A stretch of DNA of 62,905 nucleotides, counting the filler, from Choristocarpus tenellus KU-1152 (lineage: Eukaryota; Protista; Phaeophyceae): NCBI GenBank assembly GCA_964200185.2. It is 9 parts of 9 records of this genome, joined end to end, with 100 filler letters (N's around TTAATTAATTAA, not from the genome) between each part and the next. Parts side by side here need not be neighbours in the genome. Positions count along the whole stretch, not along the records: positions 38,662 to 43,108 come from CAXNAD020014507.1; 8 more parts are not named here. One strand, given 5' to 3'. The position numbers and the translations under genes are program-made. Of this stretch, positions 10,301 through 43,233 are shown in pieces (position 1 is the first letter of the stretch; each line of letters starts with the position of its first letter). The notes beneath the pieces were generated by a model. That model saw nothing but the letters and a program-made list of their open reading frames with translations. It did no database searches and was not told the DNA's origin.

Positions 10301-11325
10301 TGTGTAGTAGAGGAAATATTTCAGTGTTTTTGTGTAACACCATGCCACTTTTGGGGGGGCAGAATTCTTTCAATAATTTTTTTTAATTTCTAATTGGGTT
10401 TAAGGATTGAAAAAAAAATTATTACTTAGTGGCTCAATCTTTTTGAACACGAAACTGGAGACTTCCGCTGACTACATATGTCAAGGTTTGTGCATCAGTA
10501 GGATGGTATGTATCATACCGATGACGGTATGAGCTTAATCGATTGATCATGCTGTCATTGATTTCTTTGATAGTTGTACTGTATCCCCAACCATAACCCT
10601 AACCCTCTATGATTCTTCGCTTTTAGTAGGATATCTAAAGTTTTTCAATTTAGTTTGATTTATTTTCTGAGGGCTCCTTACAGTGAATCTTTTTGACAAG
10701 TTTTTTTTAAAATGTGTATTTGGAGAGTTGAAACCATAGACCTTGTTATGGTATGTTCATTTTTTAATTTCTTGTAAGTTATTCAGCAGTGAATCTTTTT
10801 AACAAGTTTTTTTTAAATGTGTATTTGGAGAGTTGAAACCATAGACCTTGTTATGGTATGTTCATTTTTTAATTTCTTGTAAGTTATTCATGTAAGTTAT
10901 TCTTGTAAGTTATTCAGCAGTTAATCACCACGTTGATGTTGTTGTCATTATTTCTGGTTTGTAGTGACTTTTTTTTTGTTTTCAATTTTTATATATATTT
11001 ATTTTAAGAGTTTCAAAATTGAACCAAACCGCTGTCACGATGTTTTTTATTTTTTATACTTTGTAGTATGTATGTGGAGAGGGTGAAAAAATATATCGTA
11101 GTGTTAATTTTTTAGTGTATTATTTGCAGCCCCAACCCTAACCCCCTCAAAAAGCTGTAAACTGTTCATATCTGTCTTCAACATGGCATGACTTGACAGG
11201 CAAGTTAATTTCATCCATGGTCGGAATGGTTCCGGAAAGTCTGCCATATTGGCTGCACTGCAGATATGCCTTGGGGCCAGAGCAAAACTAACCAACCGAG
11301 CCAATAAACTGGACGATCTCATCAG
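4313..11325 (+). CDS. SMC6: SMC6 (structural maintenance of chromosomes 6), partial 5' exons 4313-4397, 7138-7458, 9265-9412, 11200-11325
   Basis: The last two exons splice to ESGLVSKIMVSNFMCHRKLSIHLCR|QVNFIHGRNGSGKSAILAALQICLGARAKLTNRANKLDDLIR, the SMC6 N-terminal head with NFMCH and Walker A GRNGSGKS. The two upstream exons have AG/GT borders with compatible phase-1 junctions and encode a K/G- and D/E-rich extension (less certain). Start codon and the rest of the gene not located. Confidence 0.85.
5462..5767. repeat. 11-bp minisatellite (GTAAGTGGACC / GTAAGTGTACT / GTAATCGTACC variants), roughly 27 units
   Basis: Directly visible tandem array; it produces the repetitive ORFs 5351..5812 and 5463..5828. 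Confidence 0.95.
5815..6016. repeat. Perfect 67-bp tandem triplication
   Basis: Unit tactctattttcataacatt...gtaactgtct starts at 5815, 5882 and 5949. Confidence 0.95.
8335..8515. repeat. 60-bp tandem triplication containing CCCTAA-like repeats
   Basis: ccttctttgaaatacactgtt...ccctaaccctagcactaa repeats with period 60. Confidence 0.9.
9731..10008. mobile_element. MITE family A with a telomeric-repeat insertion in its right TIR
   Basis: TSD TGGT (9727-9730, 10009-10012); ends GGGCCGAAGTATC ... GATACTTTCACTC; (CCCTAA)4 at 9972-9995. Confidence 0.9.
10681..10890. repeat. About 106-bp direct tandem duplication (intronic)
   Basis: cagtgaatcttttt...gtaagttattca at 10681 and 10787. Confidence 0.9.
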
Positions 11326-36768: not shown

Positions 36769-38873
36769 CAAACGAGATTGCCTTGAGGGTGAAACACACG
36801 CAAGTAAGACCGACCCAAAGACCCGAGGTCACGCCCCAAAGGAATCTGCCACTGCCCCAGACTCCAATGACCTAACCCAATGCTGGAGGGACTACCACCG
36901 CAACCCAGCAGGAAATCTCTCCACCACCGACCCAAGCAGTGCAACGGAGGAACGGATGGACTGAGAGTGCAAGGATGGCAATTGCTAACCTATCGTGTTG
37001 TCAGCAAGGGCAGGAAAGAAAGGCTGTAACGTGTGAGGTTGGTGGGGACTCTGACACAAAAGCTAAGAAAGAAATTATACCGGGGGAAAAGGATGGAACT
37101 TCAAAAAGAAATTACGACCATGTAGCCACAGTGTGAGACAGAGATCTCGAATGGCATCATCGCGAGGAATGTCATGTACAGATATCTGTAATATTTTTGT
37201 GAGCTTCTAAGCTTTCAGATCACTTCGACAACACCATACCCTCACATGCATGCCAGAGCTGAAGGGAAGCCAATGAAGTGGGTCATCAAAAGGTCAGCAG
37301 ACAGGGTTTCTGACATCAACGATGGCATGTTCGACATTGACATATCGCCACTCCAAAAAGACAAATTTTTCCGACGGGCTGAAAGGATTGCAGAGAAGAC
37401 CAGAGGAATGGACAAAAAAGTCATACGGTGAAGGTGAAAAGTCCTTCGAATGATGTGGACGAGGTAACATCGCTTGACTAAACTTGATTATTCAGGGTAT
37501 AAGGATGGGTCGTCCTGAAATGTTTTCATCCAGGCGGGGTGTTGTTCCCTTTTCGAATTCCCCATCATTCCCCCCCTCGAGCAGAATCCCTCAGCTCTCT
37601 CCCTCTCCTGTGCCGTATTGTGGTTGTTGTGTGGCACGGCAACAGAAGTATCACAAAATCCTAGAAAGTTACAAAGCCTGATGAACGGTTCAAAGTTAAG
37701 TATAACACAAAAGTTAGGAAAAAGATGTCCCCAACAATGAGAGCCACCTTCCAAATAAGGTACACCCTTAAGATGACCTATCTTGAAGATCCTATCACAT
37801 TTTGTAGATGTTGTATCAAAAACCTAAACCAATACCATAAGTACCCCTACAAAAGTATCCTGTCATATATTGTATATGTATGTGCTGGTGTCAAAGGTGC
37901 CAAGTCATCTGCTCAAGGGGTCACAATCACCAGAGTGAACTCTTCCACCTTGGAGGGTGAGACCGAGTATCAAAGGTCTTGCCCAACATCTCAAAGTCAG
38001 TTGAGGAAATCCAGCACAGAACAAAAACCTCAAGACACAACAGATCTTCCCGAATGACTGAGCAACGTCCTAGCAGAGAAATGGGTCGACCAGAATCGGA
38101 ATGTCTCTTCGTTCTGACAGTCCATTTTGGCTGTTTGGTCAAATCCGGATCTTATGGGTGTGGTTGGTTTATTGGACTGGTCAGTATGGGTGAGCTAAAG
38201 TGATGTGGTTGGCGCGCGCAATTGTATATGACTGCTTTTCTTATGCACAAGTGTGTGTCGGAGATCCTAAAAATGAAACCTGTCCCTGACATATATCTTA
38301 CTACGTATGCCCCTTGACAATGTCCAGATGTGTACGGGAAAAAGTTAAACCATGATCACAAAAAATAAGGCGTTGTTTAGGAGAAGATTGCTTGCGGAGA
38401 TCCGTTGGTTGAGCGCGGTCCCTGGTTCGAGCCTCGGCACGAGTATTTTCATAATGTCCAACCTTTATGGTAGTGTTGTTTAGTAGTAAAGTCGTTTTAG
38501 TAGCTTCGCCCTCTCTAGCATATCTTGGTTTTTTTCACTGTGGGTAAAGGTATCTGGGGGGNNNNNNNNNNNNNNNNNNNNNNNNNNNNNNNNNNNNNNN
38601 NNNNNTTAATTAATTAANNNNNNNNNNNNNNNNNNNNNNNNNNNNNNNNNNNNNNNNNNNNAAAACCCAAAAAAACCACCTACCTTTCCCCAAAAAAAAA
38701 CTTTCCCCCCCCCCCCCCCCCCCCCCCCCCCCCACATACACACACACACACTTTCCTGCACTCACCCCTACACCTTCACATGGTGGTTATCCACGATGTC
38801 ACTCATCACTCTCTATGGGTCTCTACATTCAATACGGACACACGTACTAACTGTTACGCTTGGTGTGTGATAG

Positions 38874-41800
38874 TTGACCACTAACACGACGGTGGGCATG
38901 ACCTATGGGAGGGTGGAGGTGCGTGCCAAGCTGCCAAAGGGGCAGGGGCTTTGGCCGTCTATCTGGATGCTTCCGGTGGACAGCCCGTATGGGGGATGGG
39001 CATCTAGTGGTGCCATTGATATTTTGCAGGCACGCAACCTCATGTCAAGGGTGCATGGGTGAGTGTGGGGTCTGGTATATTTTTGTGAAAATCTGAGAAT
39101 GCTCTCTTCGTATTGGAGTTTGGTCTGATTGGCTTCGTGTGTGTGTGTGGGGGGGGGGAGATGACTGTGGAAGTTTTGCATTTCAAAATTATTCCTTTTG
39201 TGTGTGTGTGTGTGTGTGTTATTATTTTATTTTATTATTGAACAAAAATATTTGTAAAAAACGTTCATAGGATCCTATAGGGGGGTTCAGATGTCCATTG
39301 AGGGCCTTGGTGACCCCGTGGTGGTGGTTTTGATACCATTGGAGTTAATGCAGTTAATGTGGTTAATGTAGTGAATGTTTCACATGTAGAGGCAAATGCC
39401 CTAGTCTGGATGCACTTGCCTTCTCCATTCTCCTGCCCAGACCAAACCCAAAGGGAAGTCACCCGCAAACATAACATAACGTTCACATCAAACCGGAATG
39501 TTTTACAATACCACCTAACTTACGCCTCCCCCCCCCCCTCTTCCCTCTCGCTTCCCCCTCTTCTAGGATACACTATGGGTCATATGTGTTTTATTTCTAG
39601 TTTTTTTTGTGATGCACTGCAGGAGTGTTGTGATGTGATGGGTGTTGTTTTGGTCTTTGTTTTGATTGAAGAGTTGAGGGGAAAGGGGTGGATTTTTCTC
39701 AAGTCAGTCTGCGTGTGCTTGTGGAGTGTGTTTGATACATAGGGTTGGGGTTTCGTGGGTGTCACAGTATGGCCGTCCATGCAAGAATCAGTTGGCTATA
39801 TTTGGATGTATGTGTAAGTATTTTGGATGAATGGATATATGCATTATGTATGACTTAATCGGTATAACGTTGGTTTTACCGTTTGCACTAGATGGTATAG
39901 CACCATACTGCTCCACACTCAAAGATGCTTAGTGGTCAGTGTCTTGTTAGTGTCTCATTAGTATCTGATTAATTAATATCTAATTGATTAGTATCTGATT
40001 GATTAGTATCTGATTAATTAAATATCTAATTGATTAGTATCTGATTGATTAGTATCTGATTAATTAGTATCTGATTAATTAAATATCTAATTGATTAGTA
40101 TCTGATTAATTAATATCTAATTGATTAGTGACCAGCTAGGATAAAAGACGTATCCAAAACTAAACCGACTAACTCACTCTTTTTAACTCCATTGACGTAT
40201 TCTGTTTGCCTGGTCTTTCTCAATCTTGCCATGCCAGTCTGTCAGTCTTACGGTATGTATGTAGGTATGTAGGTATGTTCGTATGTATATATGTATATAT
40301 GTATGTGTATCTCTTATGTATGTATGTCTTTTATGTATCTATGTGTCTATATCTACCGGGTTTTTTGTTGTGTCTGGCTATCACAGGCAGCTGGTCTTTG
40401 GTGGACCGTATCCTGATGTGGACAACCTGAACATCTATGAGGGTGGGCCATGCTACTCTGATATCTATGATGACTTCTCTTCTGAGTTTCATGTGTTTGC
40501 TGTGGAATGGGAAGAGGACTCCTTCAGGTAGTGTATTATACTAGAATTAGTGATAATGATAATAAATATTTTGCTCTTGAGTTTTAGTTTGTACTGTTTT
40601 AGTACTTGAAAGTGAGGCATAAAAAACATATACATATTTGATTTTTATATTTTCAAGTGGGTTGTCCAGTCACATTGATAAAAACAAAAATATAATATTT
40701 TTGTATCTGAATTATGGTATCAGAGTATTGTAGTATATTTCTAAATGCTACCAAAATGATACTAATGTTGATAACTCCATCCTGCTACCACAGGAATGAA
40801 GGGGCTATAGCACCTACATGTGATTGATGATAGCAGTACAGGTTTGTCATGAGTCGTTTTTTCAAATATTTCTAGACCTCTACGGTCCAAGCTCTTTAGA
40901 AACTTACTCACCAGATCAAGCTGCAATTTAAAATCACCAAGAATTTCCCAATTTCTTCCAACTTAACCCCTCCCCTCCTACAACCCCCTTAACCCACATA
41001 ACCCTTCAGTGTTCTCCTCTACTACTCCCTCTGCCCCTTCCCCCCCCTCCACCCACCTTACTCCCTCCTGGGGTCCATCTGGACCTTGGTTATGCAGATG
41101 GTATGTGGATGAGAACCTGTACTGCAACCGGTCCTACTGGTACTCTAGACCGGATCCAAAGGAGGATGATTACTCCTTCCCAGCGCCATTCAACACCCCT
41201 TTCTACCTCATCCTCAATGTGGCAGTTGGGGGGACATTCACTGGTGGGGTGATTGACCAGGTGCGTTGACTTGTTCTATGGTTTTGAGAGTGTTTGTATA
41301 CTTATTTCTGTTGTTTTTTGTAATGGTGGGAAGGCTATGTGAATATGCCGTTGCTACTGTGGTTTGTGTGTTGCCTCTTGTGTGTTAAATTGATACCGGT
41401 TATTAAGTTGATATTATGTTAAATTGATACCATGCAGCATAAGTGAATACACAACATCAAGAAATGTTTATTTGTGTGCTAATCTCTGTAGTGTATGTGT
41501 GTGTTTTATGGTTTGTTTGTTGCCTTTCTAGTGTCGTTTGTTACTGTTTGTCGTTAATGTGTGGCAAAAAAAAGAAGATTTTTGTAACTGCCTTTTTTTA
41601 ACTCTTTTTGTAAAATGTGTAACCTACTTTTTTCTGTGTTATCTGTGAAAGGGTTAGTTAGGGTTATTGTTGGTGAATCGTTCGATACCTGAGGTAGAGG
41701 GGTTTGTATATATTTTGGCTTGTTTGGATGTGTTGTGCATGCCCATTCGTGTTGTTTGTAATGAATGCTGTGTGGTACATCGATTTTTCTGCTCAAGTAT

Positions 41801-43049
41801 CACACCTTGGTTTTGTTTTTTCAGCCTGTTTGGCCTGTTTGGGTTGGGTGCATGAAACGCGAAGGGTCTGCAGCGGGGAGAGCATAAGCATATAACTTCT
41901 AAACCGGCTCTTTGTATGTGTATGTGTTTTTGTCAGTCTGCTGCAGACACCCATTGAATCAGATCATGTAGGATGTATATATATATATATATACATACCA
42001 AGTACCACGGAGCTTATTTCAATTGATGGGCTATAGGGCTAGCTCTACATTCTGACTGCAAAATGCGATCATATCTTTCTTTGAAAAGGTCTCTGCTTCA
42101 GTAATCTGTTCACTAATTTAGTGGGAAAATGAGAAAGAAAAAAAAAAGTGAGGGTGCATGATTTTATTTTTTAACTGCTTTTAATTTAACTCATCACAAA
42201 AAAAACTAACGGGAAAAAAAGCTTGTTTTTTTTTGTGCGAGAATATTTATGGGGGGTATTTAGTATTTTTTAAGTGGGTCTATTTTTTTTTTTAATAGAA
42301 AATGTCGAATTATCTTCAGGAGTGTGAAACCAAAATAGAGTGAGGAGAATAGAGAGGGGAATTGCATTTGTTTTCTCGGGTCATGATATTTTTTTCATTA
42401 TTTTCTTAGGTCTTGTTCCAATTGTCATAATTGGAATGGCAATATTGGCTACGCCCTCTCACACGACGCAGGAGGTTTGATATATTTTTTTGTAGTGTGT
42501 AGTGTAATTTGTGAAATGCTGCCATTTAAAGCCATTTTTTTGTAATAGCATGTTGTTGTCTAATGGTACAAATAGTGTTTTTTTATTTCCAACAAGAAAT
42601 GTACCTGTACCCTCCTTCTATACCCTGACCGAAACTCTGCCCCCTCTTGTCCCTCCTGTTACAGATACAGGTATACGTTCTACTGCACTTTGGTTTCCTT
42701 ATGTTTCATGTCTTATCTCACACTTTATCCCCTCCCCCCTCCCCAAATTTCGCCTCATGCATACGAAAAAATATTCAAATACGATTTTTCCTGGGTCAAG
42801 GCACTGCTGGAGACCAATCCAGAATTACTTGTGGACTATGTTAGGATGTACACGTTAGATGGACAAAATGTCACAGTAGCTCCCAATCCAAACCCGGAGA
42901 CAGCCAGGGATGCAGGCGGGGACGTTAATACATTGGCCTTGGCAATTGTGGCTGGGGTGCTGATATTCCTCGTGGCTTGTTGCTGTTTGGTGGGTATGGC
43001 GTGTGATGTATTGTTTGGGGGGGGGGGGGGAGGTAAGAAGGCAAATTGA
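38874..43049 (+). CDS. GH16 laminarinase/beta-1,3-glucan-binding-like protein lacking both catalytic Glu, with C-terminal TM helix; exons 38874-39058, 40387-40527, 41098-41260, 42801-about 42993/43049
   Basis: TYGRVEVRAKLPKGQGLWPSIWMLP..YGGWASSGAIDILQ; FHVFAVEWEEDSFR|WYVD; APFNTPFYLILNVAVGG; LLVDYVRMY; then hydrophobic LALAIVAGVLIFLVACCCLV. Junctions are phase-compatible. 5' exons missing and end of last exon uncertain. Confidence 0.9.
39955..40130. repeat. Intronic short-period satellite (tagtatctgatt(a/g)at variants)
   Basis: Directly visible degenerate tandem array. Confidence 0.85.
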
Positions 43050-43233
43050 GAAGAGGAAGCTTGCATGGTAAGGAAGAGGAGAAAGATGGTTGATATAATG
43101 GGATGGGGNNNNNNNNNNNNNNNNNNNNNNNNNNNNNNNNNNNNNNNNNNNNTTAATTAATTAANNNNNNNNNNNNNNNNNNNNNNNNNNNNNNNNNNNN
43201 NNNNNNNNAAAAAATAATAAAAAAATTTCCCTG

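Follow-up and report, generated by a model that had tools for sequence, protein, structure and literature searches.

The DNA analyzed here is a stretch of 62,905 nucleotides from the brown alga Choristocarpus tenellus KU-1152 (assembly GCA_964200185.2), in the following referred to as the window. The piece examined in it (positions 38662-43108; eukaryotic genomic DNA) probably carries the last four ectodomain exons of a type I membrane protein that is conserved in brown algae and has three tandem modules of glycoside hydrolase family 16 (GH16), the third of which would serve as a non-catalytic glucan binder beside a presumably active module. One plus-strand reading frame is spread over the four exons (A-D; Table 1), which code for a stalk, a transmembrane helix and, ahead of these, a laminarinase-like GH16 domain represented by its C-terminal two thirds. 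As shown below, this third module cannot hydrolyse glucan by the retaining GH16 mechanism, because both the nucleophile and the acid/base glutamate are replaced. A preliminary description of the piece, made from the sequence alone, had proposed a module that is non-catalytic by this mechanism and tethered to the membrane, and both properties were borne out. Its view of the whole protein as a pseudo-glucanase was not, since three full-length orthologues carry an intact EIDIFE module on the same polypeptide.

Loss of the catalytic glutamates in a GH16 module

Direct reading of exon A yielded the motif WASSGAIDILQ at positions 38997-39029, in which the nucleophile glutamate is replaced by alanine (GCC, 39012-39014) and the acid/base glutamate by glutamine (CAG, 39027-39029); the aspartate of the motif is kept (GAT, 39018-39020). 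The window exons were searched one at a time. A phmmer search of exon A against the PDB chains detected GH16 laminarinases with a best E-value of 3.6e-17 and placed SGAIDILQ opposite SGEIDIME, and the two replacements named in the preliminary description were thus confirmed by the reading and by the alignment. Exons B and C also matched laminarinases (E-values of 0.01 to 2e-4) by way of FHVFAVEW and PFYLILNVAVGG, and exon D gave no meaningful match among the PDB chains. The matches of exon C to SAKe designer proteins in the same search were discarded as repeat artefacts. The cleft motifs described earlier, LWPSIWMLP, FHVFAVEW, PFYLILNVAVGG and VDYVR, were all found in the window exons. The Pfam profile PF00722 scored 21.7 bits on exon A alone, with a cut-off of 22, and 46.7 and 80.2 bits on orthologues, and a Pfam search of exons B, C and D singly returned no match. 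According to the phmmer alignments, the Pfam matches of the orthologues and the orthologue model presented below, the module belongs by fold and sequence to the GH16 family, as a well-preserved beta-jelly roll of the laminarinase type. It lacks the ExDxxE signature of a GH16 enzyme, as it reads A-I-D-I-L-Q and the first glutamate is absent from all seven orthologous loci.

A phmmer search with exon A against 1.84 billion representative proteins resulted in 6362 matches, and the motif was read in the best 150 of them. ExDxxE occurred in 162 motif instances among these 150, and the first glutamate was missing in five proteins. Four of the five are the closest single-module relatives of the window, with 73-82% identity: P0009 of Ectocarpus fasciculatus (AINILE), P0013 (SINILH), P0014 (AIDLLQ) and P0016 (AINIVQ). 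The fifth, P0068, looks like an unrelated fragment. Many of the top matches of exon A (P0001-P0012, P0017, P0019, P0021 and P0023) are proteins of up to 3069 amino acids with two to four GH16 modules, all with ExDxxE.

Conservation of the fold and the sugar cleft

The cleft was evaluated in an alignment of 118 bacterial GH16 laminarinases, all with ExDxxE, to which the window exons were added as separate fragments. Among the columns covered by the window, 60 are conserved in at least 80% and 37 in at least 95% of these active enzymes. The window module agrees with 51 of the 60 and 32 of the 37 columns; the corresponding numbers for the Ectocarpus orthologue are 48 and 34 in module 3, 53 and 37 in module 1, and 25 and 15 in module 2. 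At the 95% level, all that the window module has lost is the pair of glutamates, WPA (now WPS), PFD (now PFN) and a Val that is conservatively replaced by Met. The module accordingly displays a laminarinase cleft of the GH16_3 type, with WPA to WPS, GTxH to GQxV and PFD to PFN as its non-catalytic losses.

The fold was modelled with AlphaFold2 on module 3 of the Ectocarpus orthologue as a proxy. The model reached a predicted local distance difference test (pLDDT) score of 76.6 and a predicted template modelling score (pTM) of 0.78, and its comparison with laminarinase structures gave target-normalised template modelling scores of 0.82-0.88. Several of the matched structures are Glu-to-Ser or Glu-to-Ala mutants that were crystallised with bound laminari-oligosaccharides; such substitutions are therefore compatible with binding. 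On the basis of cleft conservation and of the orthologue model, it is plausible that module 3 has retained the ability to bind sugar.

Orthologous loci and purifying selection

Seven orthologous loci (L001-L007) were compared exon by exon with the window. All four window exons align end to end with their counterparts in the seven loci, with 59-82% identity per exon, and all five exon borders match those of Ectocarpus sp. 6 in position and phase. With Ectocarpus species as the nearest relatives, these matches place the source of the piece in the brown algae or very near them. The nucleophile is absent from all seven loci, with Ala or Ser in its place, and the aspartate of the motif is Asn in five of the seven. 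The acid/base position varies: it is occupied by Gln in the window, L001, L004 and the full-length orthologue P0392, by His in L003 and by Glu in the Ectocarpus copies (AINILE), a variability that is expected after catalysis has been given up. Conservation of the two losses, which the preliminary description had proposed as a check, was found for the nucleophile in every locus, but the Gln at the acid/base position is not uniform.

The ratio of nonsynonymous to synonymous substitution rates (dN/dS), determined by the Nei-Gojobori method (NG86) and summed over the separate exons, was 0.09-0.12 wherever dS was unsaturated, including 0.10-0.12 for the Ectocarpus species pairs and 0.116 for L005 and L003. 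Between the window and Ectocarpus, the proportions of nonsynonymous (pN) and synonymous (pS) differences were 0.17-0.18 and 0.73-0.80, respectively. The module is under strong purifying selection and neutral decay is excluded; with a dN/dS of about 0.1 it is therefore not a pseudogene.

Among the Ectocarpus species, the downstream gene order is shared as well: an opposite-strand Methyltransf_16 gene is followed by a gene with a 4Fe-4S ferredoxin domain (L008, 24214-27697 and 27885 onward; L005, 7843-14242). The shared order could be of use in locating the orthologue in other brown algae.

Splicing and expression

Three public sequencing runs of one study (X1, X2 and X3) were compared with the stretch, and none of them revealed a base difference from the window. 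Coverage was even and resembled that of genomic DNA in two runs, and the word depth of X2 was 250-400 in the exons versus 13-28 in the introns. Contigs of X2 bridge all three internal introns at GT..AG borders, in agreement with the intact splice sites noted in the preliminary description, and the spliced contigs carry exactly the Ala and Gln codons; the X2 contig over 38872-39059 is free of differences. These spliced contigs together with the contrast in depth between exons and introns indicate that the module is expressed, and neither the pseudogene decay nor the lack of expression that would have spoken against the earlier proposal was found.

At the outer borders of exons A and D, the spliced X2 contigs run on into other sequence, upstream from 38872 and downstream from 42991. 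The transcript thus extends past the piece on both sides. At the upstream border, exon A is preceded by another domain exon that ends in ...FEDNIFTSAK and is spliced at 38874; the 30 nt seen of it still belong to module 3. Downstream, the transmembrane helix continues with VSAC and then KSNRR in an exon beyond the piece (X2 contig, hand translation; ...CCCL/VSACKSNRR, with the slash at the exon junction), and the Ectocarpus junction SLCL/MINCIAKRK agrees with it in place and phase. The short stalk and the transmembrane helix that had been proposed are both present, with a stalk of 26 residues, but the reading frame does not continue to a stop codon at 43049 as had been assumed: exon D ends at 42989, and the poly-G stretch read as GGGGGGKKAN* is part of an intron according to the X2 contig.

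Some irregularities were noted in the reads and contigs. Run X3 has a one-base deletion at 40020, in intron 1. A contig joint from 39549 to 40675 (X1 and X2) leaves out 1125 bases; its ends are GC..CA, and its shorter side has only 21 letters. Another from 43037 to 42858 (X1) turns back on itself and includes 29 foreign letters. Both joints have the appearance of graph artefacts induced by repeats, or of a dispersed repeat, and not of splicing.

Domain architecture of the orthologous proteins

Three full-length orthologues were available, namely P0387 of Ectocarpus sp. 6 (CAM9954136.1, 1284 amino acids) and the EukProt proteins P0391 and P0392 (g10939.t1 and g16770.t1), which originate from gene-prediction pipelines other than that of P0387. 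All three display one common layout, consisting of a signal peptide, a GH16 module 1 with an intact EIDIFE motif, a degenerate GH16-like module 2, the dead module 3, a transmembrane helix and a cytosolic tail with a length of about 350 residues. In P0387, the N-terminus is signal-peptide-like and module 1 reads WAASGEIDIFE, module 2 reads GQVDVVVVE with most signature residues gone, and module 3, the counterpart of the window module, reads GGAINILE; stalk and transmembrane helix are followed by the tail, in which Gly, Ala and Ser are abundant. Module 3 of P0392 reads AINILQ. One unbroken exon of the locus L008 (about 11060-11290) runs from the final strands of module 1 through the linker into module 2, which starts with WGDEFN. 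The fusion is therefore real and does not result from merged neighbouring gene models.

By its module 3, stalk, transmembrane helix and exon structure, the window gene is a member of this group of brown-algal tri-modular GH16 membrane proteins. In C. tenellus, modules 1 and 2, the signal peptide and the tail are predicted from the orthologues. Intron position and phase are shared by modules 2 and 3 only, at one site; the assumption that introns common to modules 1 and 3 prove an internal duplication did not hold up.

The tails of P0387, P0392, P0391, P0152 and P0384 are disordered and Gly/Ala/Ser-rich and contain short conserved islands, comprising TESPxWGxRxG, PRPxSGxIPEDW, SxDxxIEEAIAxSA, DVWMGxxSTVGS, SVGSxxSExPPxMxGLRL and the C-terminal GLPSYEEVV, which has PY-like and YxxPhi-like features. 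A Pfam search of the orthologues' tail detected no domain, including no kinase or other signalling domain.

The public E. siliculosus protein CBN78473.1 (417 amino acids) is named '1,3-beta-glucan-binding protein, family GH16'. Both CBN78473.1 and the 1284-residue protein of Ectocarpus sp. 6 are members of 90%-identity clusters of Ectocarpus matches. The CBN78473.1 model starts in the middle of module 2 and is devoid of the transmembrane helix and the tail, and its locus is interrupted by runs of N (L009; FN649758.1, 1621089-1647449). Its neighbours are a GH16 gene of 323 amino acids that resembles the N-terminal module and a gene of 113 amino acids that resembles the tail of the 1284-residue protein, and the three E. 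siliculosus models thus appear to be one gene.

In the early-branching brown alga Discosporangium mesarthrocarpum, the protein P0020 (469 amino acids) contains an EIDIME module directly before a GH16-like module with DITVVQ. The tandem arrangement of an active and a dead GH16 module may be old in the brown-algal lineage.

Proposed function and alternative explanations

Because the orthologues carry a module with an intact EIDIFE motif on the same polypeptide, a glucanase tethered to the membrane, with further GH16-derived modules for binding or spacing, is a more likely description of the whole protein than a pseudo-glucanase receptor standing alone. Module 3, with its preserved sugar cleft, would bind beta-1,3- or beta-1,3/1,4-glucan without catalysis, in the manner of a carbohydrate-binding module (CBM), and could retain glucan chains at the face of the membrane for the distal active module to cut or transglycosylate. 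Glucan binding is a candidate function of module 3, for which the public name of the E. siliculosus orthologue and the conservation of the cleft speak. The N-glycosylation sequons NTT (38883-38891, exon A), NRS (41126-41134, exon C) and NVT (42867-42875, exon D stalk) together with the signal peptide of the orthologues put the modules outside the cytosol. At the plasma membrane, the substrate would be wall glucans, either callose-like beta-1,3-glucan or mixed-linkage glucan, which is a component of brown-algal walls (PMC5460208). If the protein faces the vacuole lumen, the substrate would be laminarin, which is stored in the vacuole of stramenopiles (PMC8541152).

Several points weigh against this tethered glucanase with a glucan-binding third module. 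WPA, GTxH and PFD are changed in the window module relative to the active enzymes, as described above, and an open cleft need not bind glucan, as is evident from Rv0315 (PMC4606783). The His of GTxH is absent also from module 1 of the brown-algal proteins, the activity of which is presumed, and an active module 1 in C. tenellus itself is predicted from the orthologues. Type I topology would suit the plasma membrane and the tonoplast; of the surface anchoring claimed in the preliminary description, the membrane anchor is present, but a vacuolar or endomembrane lumen fits as well as a location at the surface. Finally, the conserved motifs of the tail hint at regulation or signalling that the model leaves unexplained.

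Among the alternatives, it appears unlikely that the dead modules are purely structural and act as rigid spacers that keep the catalytic module off the membrane without any sugar binding. Module 2 retains 25 of the 60 conserved columns and is nevertheless conserved between species, which points to a non-binding structural role for at least one module. In module 3, however, the tryptophans and polar residues of the cleft are preserved far better (51 of the 60 columns) than a mere spacer would need, and a dN/dS of about 0.1 applies to the entire module.

The preliminary description had put forward a membrane receptor or sensor, in which the dead module binds beta-1,3-glucan from pathogens or wall damage and signals through the transmembrane helix to the tail, and this seems somewhat less probable than the spacer. 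A module that is dead yet conserved would be in keeping with it, as would the type I topology and the long disordered tail with the conserved islands TESPxWG, PRPxSGxIPEDW, IEEAIA and GLPSYEEVV. Brown algae deposit beta-1,3-glucan on attack by the oomycete Eurychasma (PMC12396294), and none of the reviews consulted describes a brown-algal glucan receptor. On the other hand, the chain of the orthologues also includes a GH16 module that appears active, and the sensor claim was not supported by Pfam, as the orthologues' tail is without a kinase or other signalling domain; moreover, the tail motifs LPSY and YEEV are possible sorting or ubiquitin-ligase recognition motifs and would fit these roles equally well.

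A related proposal, which we rate as slightly more doubtful again, is an enzyme-coupled beta-glucan sensor: the dead module would bind glucan, possibly fragments released by the protein's own active module, and the Cys-rich transmembrane helix would connect it with the tail, where the islands PRPxSGxIPEDW, IEEAIA and GLPSYEEVV would recruit signalling or endocytic machinery. If true, brown algae would possess a receptor for patterns or damage that is coupled to an enzyme and arose independently.

It is very improbable that module 3 is still catalytic in a non-canonical way, with another residue as nucleophile or by a glycosynthase-like transfer from an activated donor. Engineered GH16 enzymes without a nucleophile do work as glycosynthases with activated donors, and the Ectocarpus copies keep the acid/base glutamate (AINILE), but we know of no natural activated donor, and the acid/base residue is also lost in the window, L001, L004 and P0392 (Gln) and in L003 (His), which suggests that the position is not used. 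Nothing apart from the lost glutamates favours a pseudogene in decay, an error of assembly or sequencing or a relic without expression, and these readings can practically be dismissed in view of the zero differences in three runs, the high-depth spliced contigs, the intact frames and splice sites and a dN/dS of about 0.1 over seven loci.

Comparison with known GH16 proteins

The window gene is orthologous to those of CBN78473.1, CAM9954136.1, g10939.t1 and g16770.t1, and the nucleophile glutamate is lost in all of them. The stalk, the Cys-rich transmembrane helix and the basic juxtamembrane stretch are common to the window gene and the Ectocarpus and EukProt orthologues. The window motif AIDILQ, with the Asp kept and Gln at the acid/base position, differs from AINILE of Ectocarpus, and C. 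tenellus is distant from Ectocarpus, since synonymous sites are saturated and the window introns are AT-rich.

Outside the brown-algal group, the nearest sequence relatives are bacterial laminarinases and not animal proteins. The bacterial GH16_3 endo-beta-1,3-glucanases (ZgLamC, 4CRQ; Thermotoga maritima, 3AZX; 7WWC) have the same fold, 43-49% identity and the common cleft signature WPxxWMLP, W-x-x-SG, FHxFxxEW, PFxxxFxLxxNxAVGG and VDYVRxY. Unlike these enzymes, the window module has both glutamates replaced and is specified by a eukaryotic intron-containing gene, with a membrane anchor and as one of three tandem modules.

The invertebrate proteins betaGRP, GNBP and LGBP likewise possess a GH16-like domain without the catalytic glutamates, which plays a non-enzymatic role in beta-1,3-glucan biology. 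The betaGRP/GNBP proteins are soluble haemolymph proteins that bind glucan mainly by an N-terminal CBM39. In contrast, the brown-algal orthologues are anchored in the membrane and contain a further GH16 module that is intact, and no CBM39 is recorded in them. The window protein was not assigned to the betaGRP/GNBP group, as only GH16-type Pfam domains are recorded in its orthologues along with the transmembrane helix, which is present in the window too. The parallel to the insect proteins drawn in the preliminary description remains valid as a loss of glutamates without common descent.

The yeast proteins Kre6 and Skn1 and the TGS proteins of diatoms and haptophytes act in glucan synthesis. 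They resemble the window protein in that a GH16-type ecto- or luminal domain is part of a single-pass membrane protein, in organisms that produce beta-glucans. They are, however, type II proteins with a retained catalytic motif and constitute a subfamily of their own, whereas the window protein is of type I and has lost the catalytic residues. On exon A, the profile PF03935 (SKN1_KRE6_Sbg1) gave an E-value of 0.2; in P0152, its match covered 68 residues with 40.9 bits and overlapped that of GH16. With this marginal match, a transmembrane helix C-terminal to the domain and the loss of the catalytic residues, membership in the Kre6/Skn1/TGS group was rejected.

A natural GH16 beta-1,3-glucanase homologue without hydrolytic activity is Rv0315 of Mycobacterium tuberculosis, which keeps both glutamates and is inactive through a widened groove that fails to bind glucan (PMC4606783). 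The window module, in contrast, has lost the glutamates and mostly kept the cleft residues.

Significance for the GH16 repertoire of brown algae

The idea of a GH16 protein that binds glucan without hydrolysing it is already recorded in the public name of CBN78473.1, and no paper discussing this protein was found in the literature. What the present data contribute is a distant orthologue that lacks both glutamates, together with the three-module architecture and a repaired version of the fragmented E. siliculosus reference model; a mechanism of a categorically new kind does not emerge from the locus. In brown algae, GH16 is one of the glycoside hydrolase families with the most members, which a recent survey counts as enzymes of laminarin degradation (PMC11468063). 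One conserved member at least combines one probably active module, two non-catalytic GH16-derived modules and a membrane anchor, and gene counts therefore overstate the catalytic capacity. The window module further represents a case in which a GH16 module was turned into a probable carbohydrate-binding module within a eukaryote, and the protein is a concrete candidate for the handling of beta-glucan at a brown-algal membrane, be it in wall remodelling, in callose-like defence deposits or in vacuolar laminarin turnover.

Gene structure and minor features of the piece

The G+C content of the piece is about 50% in the exons and about 30-40% in the long introns, and microsatellites are numerous. 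The coordinates of the gene are compiled in Table 1.

Table 1. Features of the GH16 membrane protein gene in the examined piece (positions of the window; residues in parentheses are split by an intron)
Feature	Position	Strand	Phase or borders	Coded sequence	Evidence
Exon A	38874..39058	+	phase 0 start; end 2 nt into Gly codon	LTTNTTVGMTYGRVEVRAKLPKGQGLWPSIWMLPVDSPYGGWASSGAIDILQARNLMSRVH(G)	
Catalytic ExDxxE remnant	39012..39029	+		A-I-D-I-L-Q	direct reading and PDB phmmer alignment
Intron 1	39059..40386	+	GT..AG; AT-rich		X2 contig joint 39057 to 40386
Exon B	40387..40527	+	phase 2 to phase 2	(G)QLVFGGPYPDVDNLNIYEGGPCYSDIYDDFSSEFHVFAVEWEEDSF(R)	
Intron 2	40528..41097	+	GT..AG		X2 contig joint 40524 to 41095 (cut +3)
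Exon C	41098..41260	+	phase 2 to phase 0	(R)WYVDENLYCNRSYWYSRPDPKEDDYSFPAPFNTPFYLILNVAVGGTFTGGVIDQ	
Intron 3	41261..42800	+	GT..AG		X2 contig joint 41258 to 42799 (cut +2)
Exon D	42801..42989	+			
Exon D part 1, final GH16 strand	42801..42851	+		ALLETNPELLVDYVRMY (including LLVDYVRMY)	alignment with orthologues
Exon D, stalk (26 residues)	42852..42929	+		TLDGQNVTVAPNPNPETARDAGGDVN	aligns with Ectocarpus stalk
Exon D, hydrophobic Cys-rich transmembrane helix	42930..42989	+		TLALAIVAGVLIFLVACCCL	reading and X2 loose end behind 42991
Start of next intron	42990..43108	+	GT at 42990-42991		X2 contig leaves genome at 42991; depth falls from 398 to 28

An Rfam scan of the piece returned no match. Intron 1 contains an AT-rich minisatellite at 39957-40129, in which 46- and 61-bp units enclose a 15-bp unit (about 11 copies), and, at 40253-40344, an imperfect (GTAT)n tract whose end lies about 40 nt ahead of the exon B acceptor. 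A 29-base poly-C run is located upstream of exon A (38705-38733) and a poly-G run just past the exon D donor (about 43017-43030). The contigs of all runs break at the poly-C and poly-G runs and at (TG)n tracts, which is the probable reason for the short genome piece.

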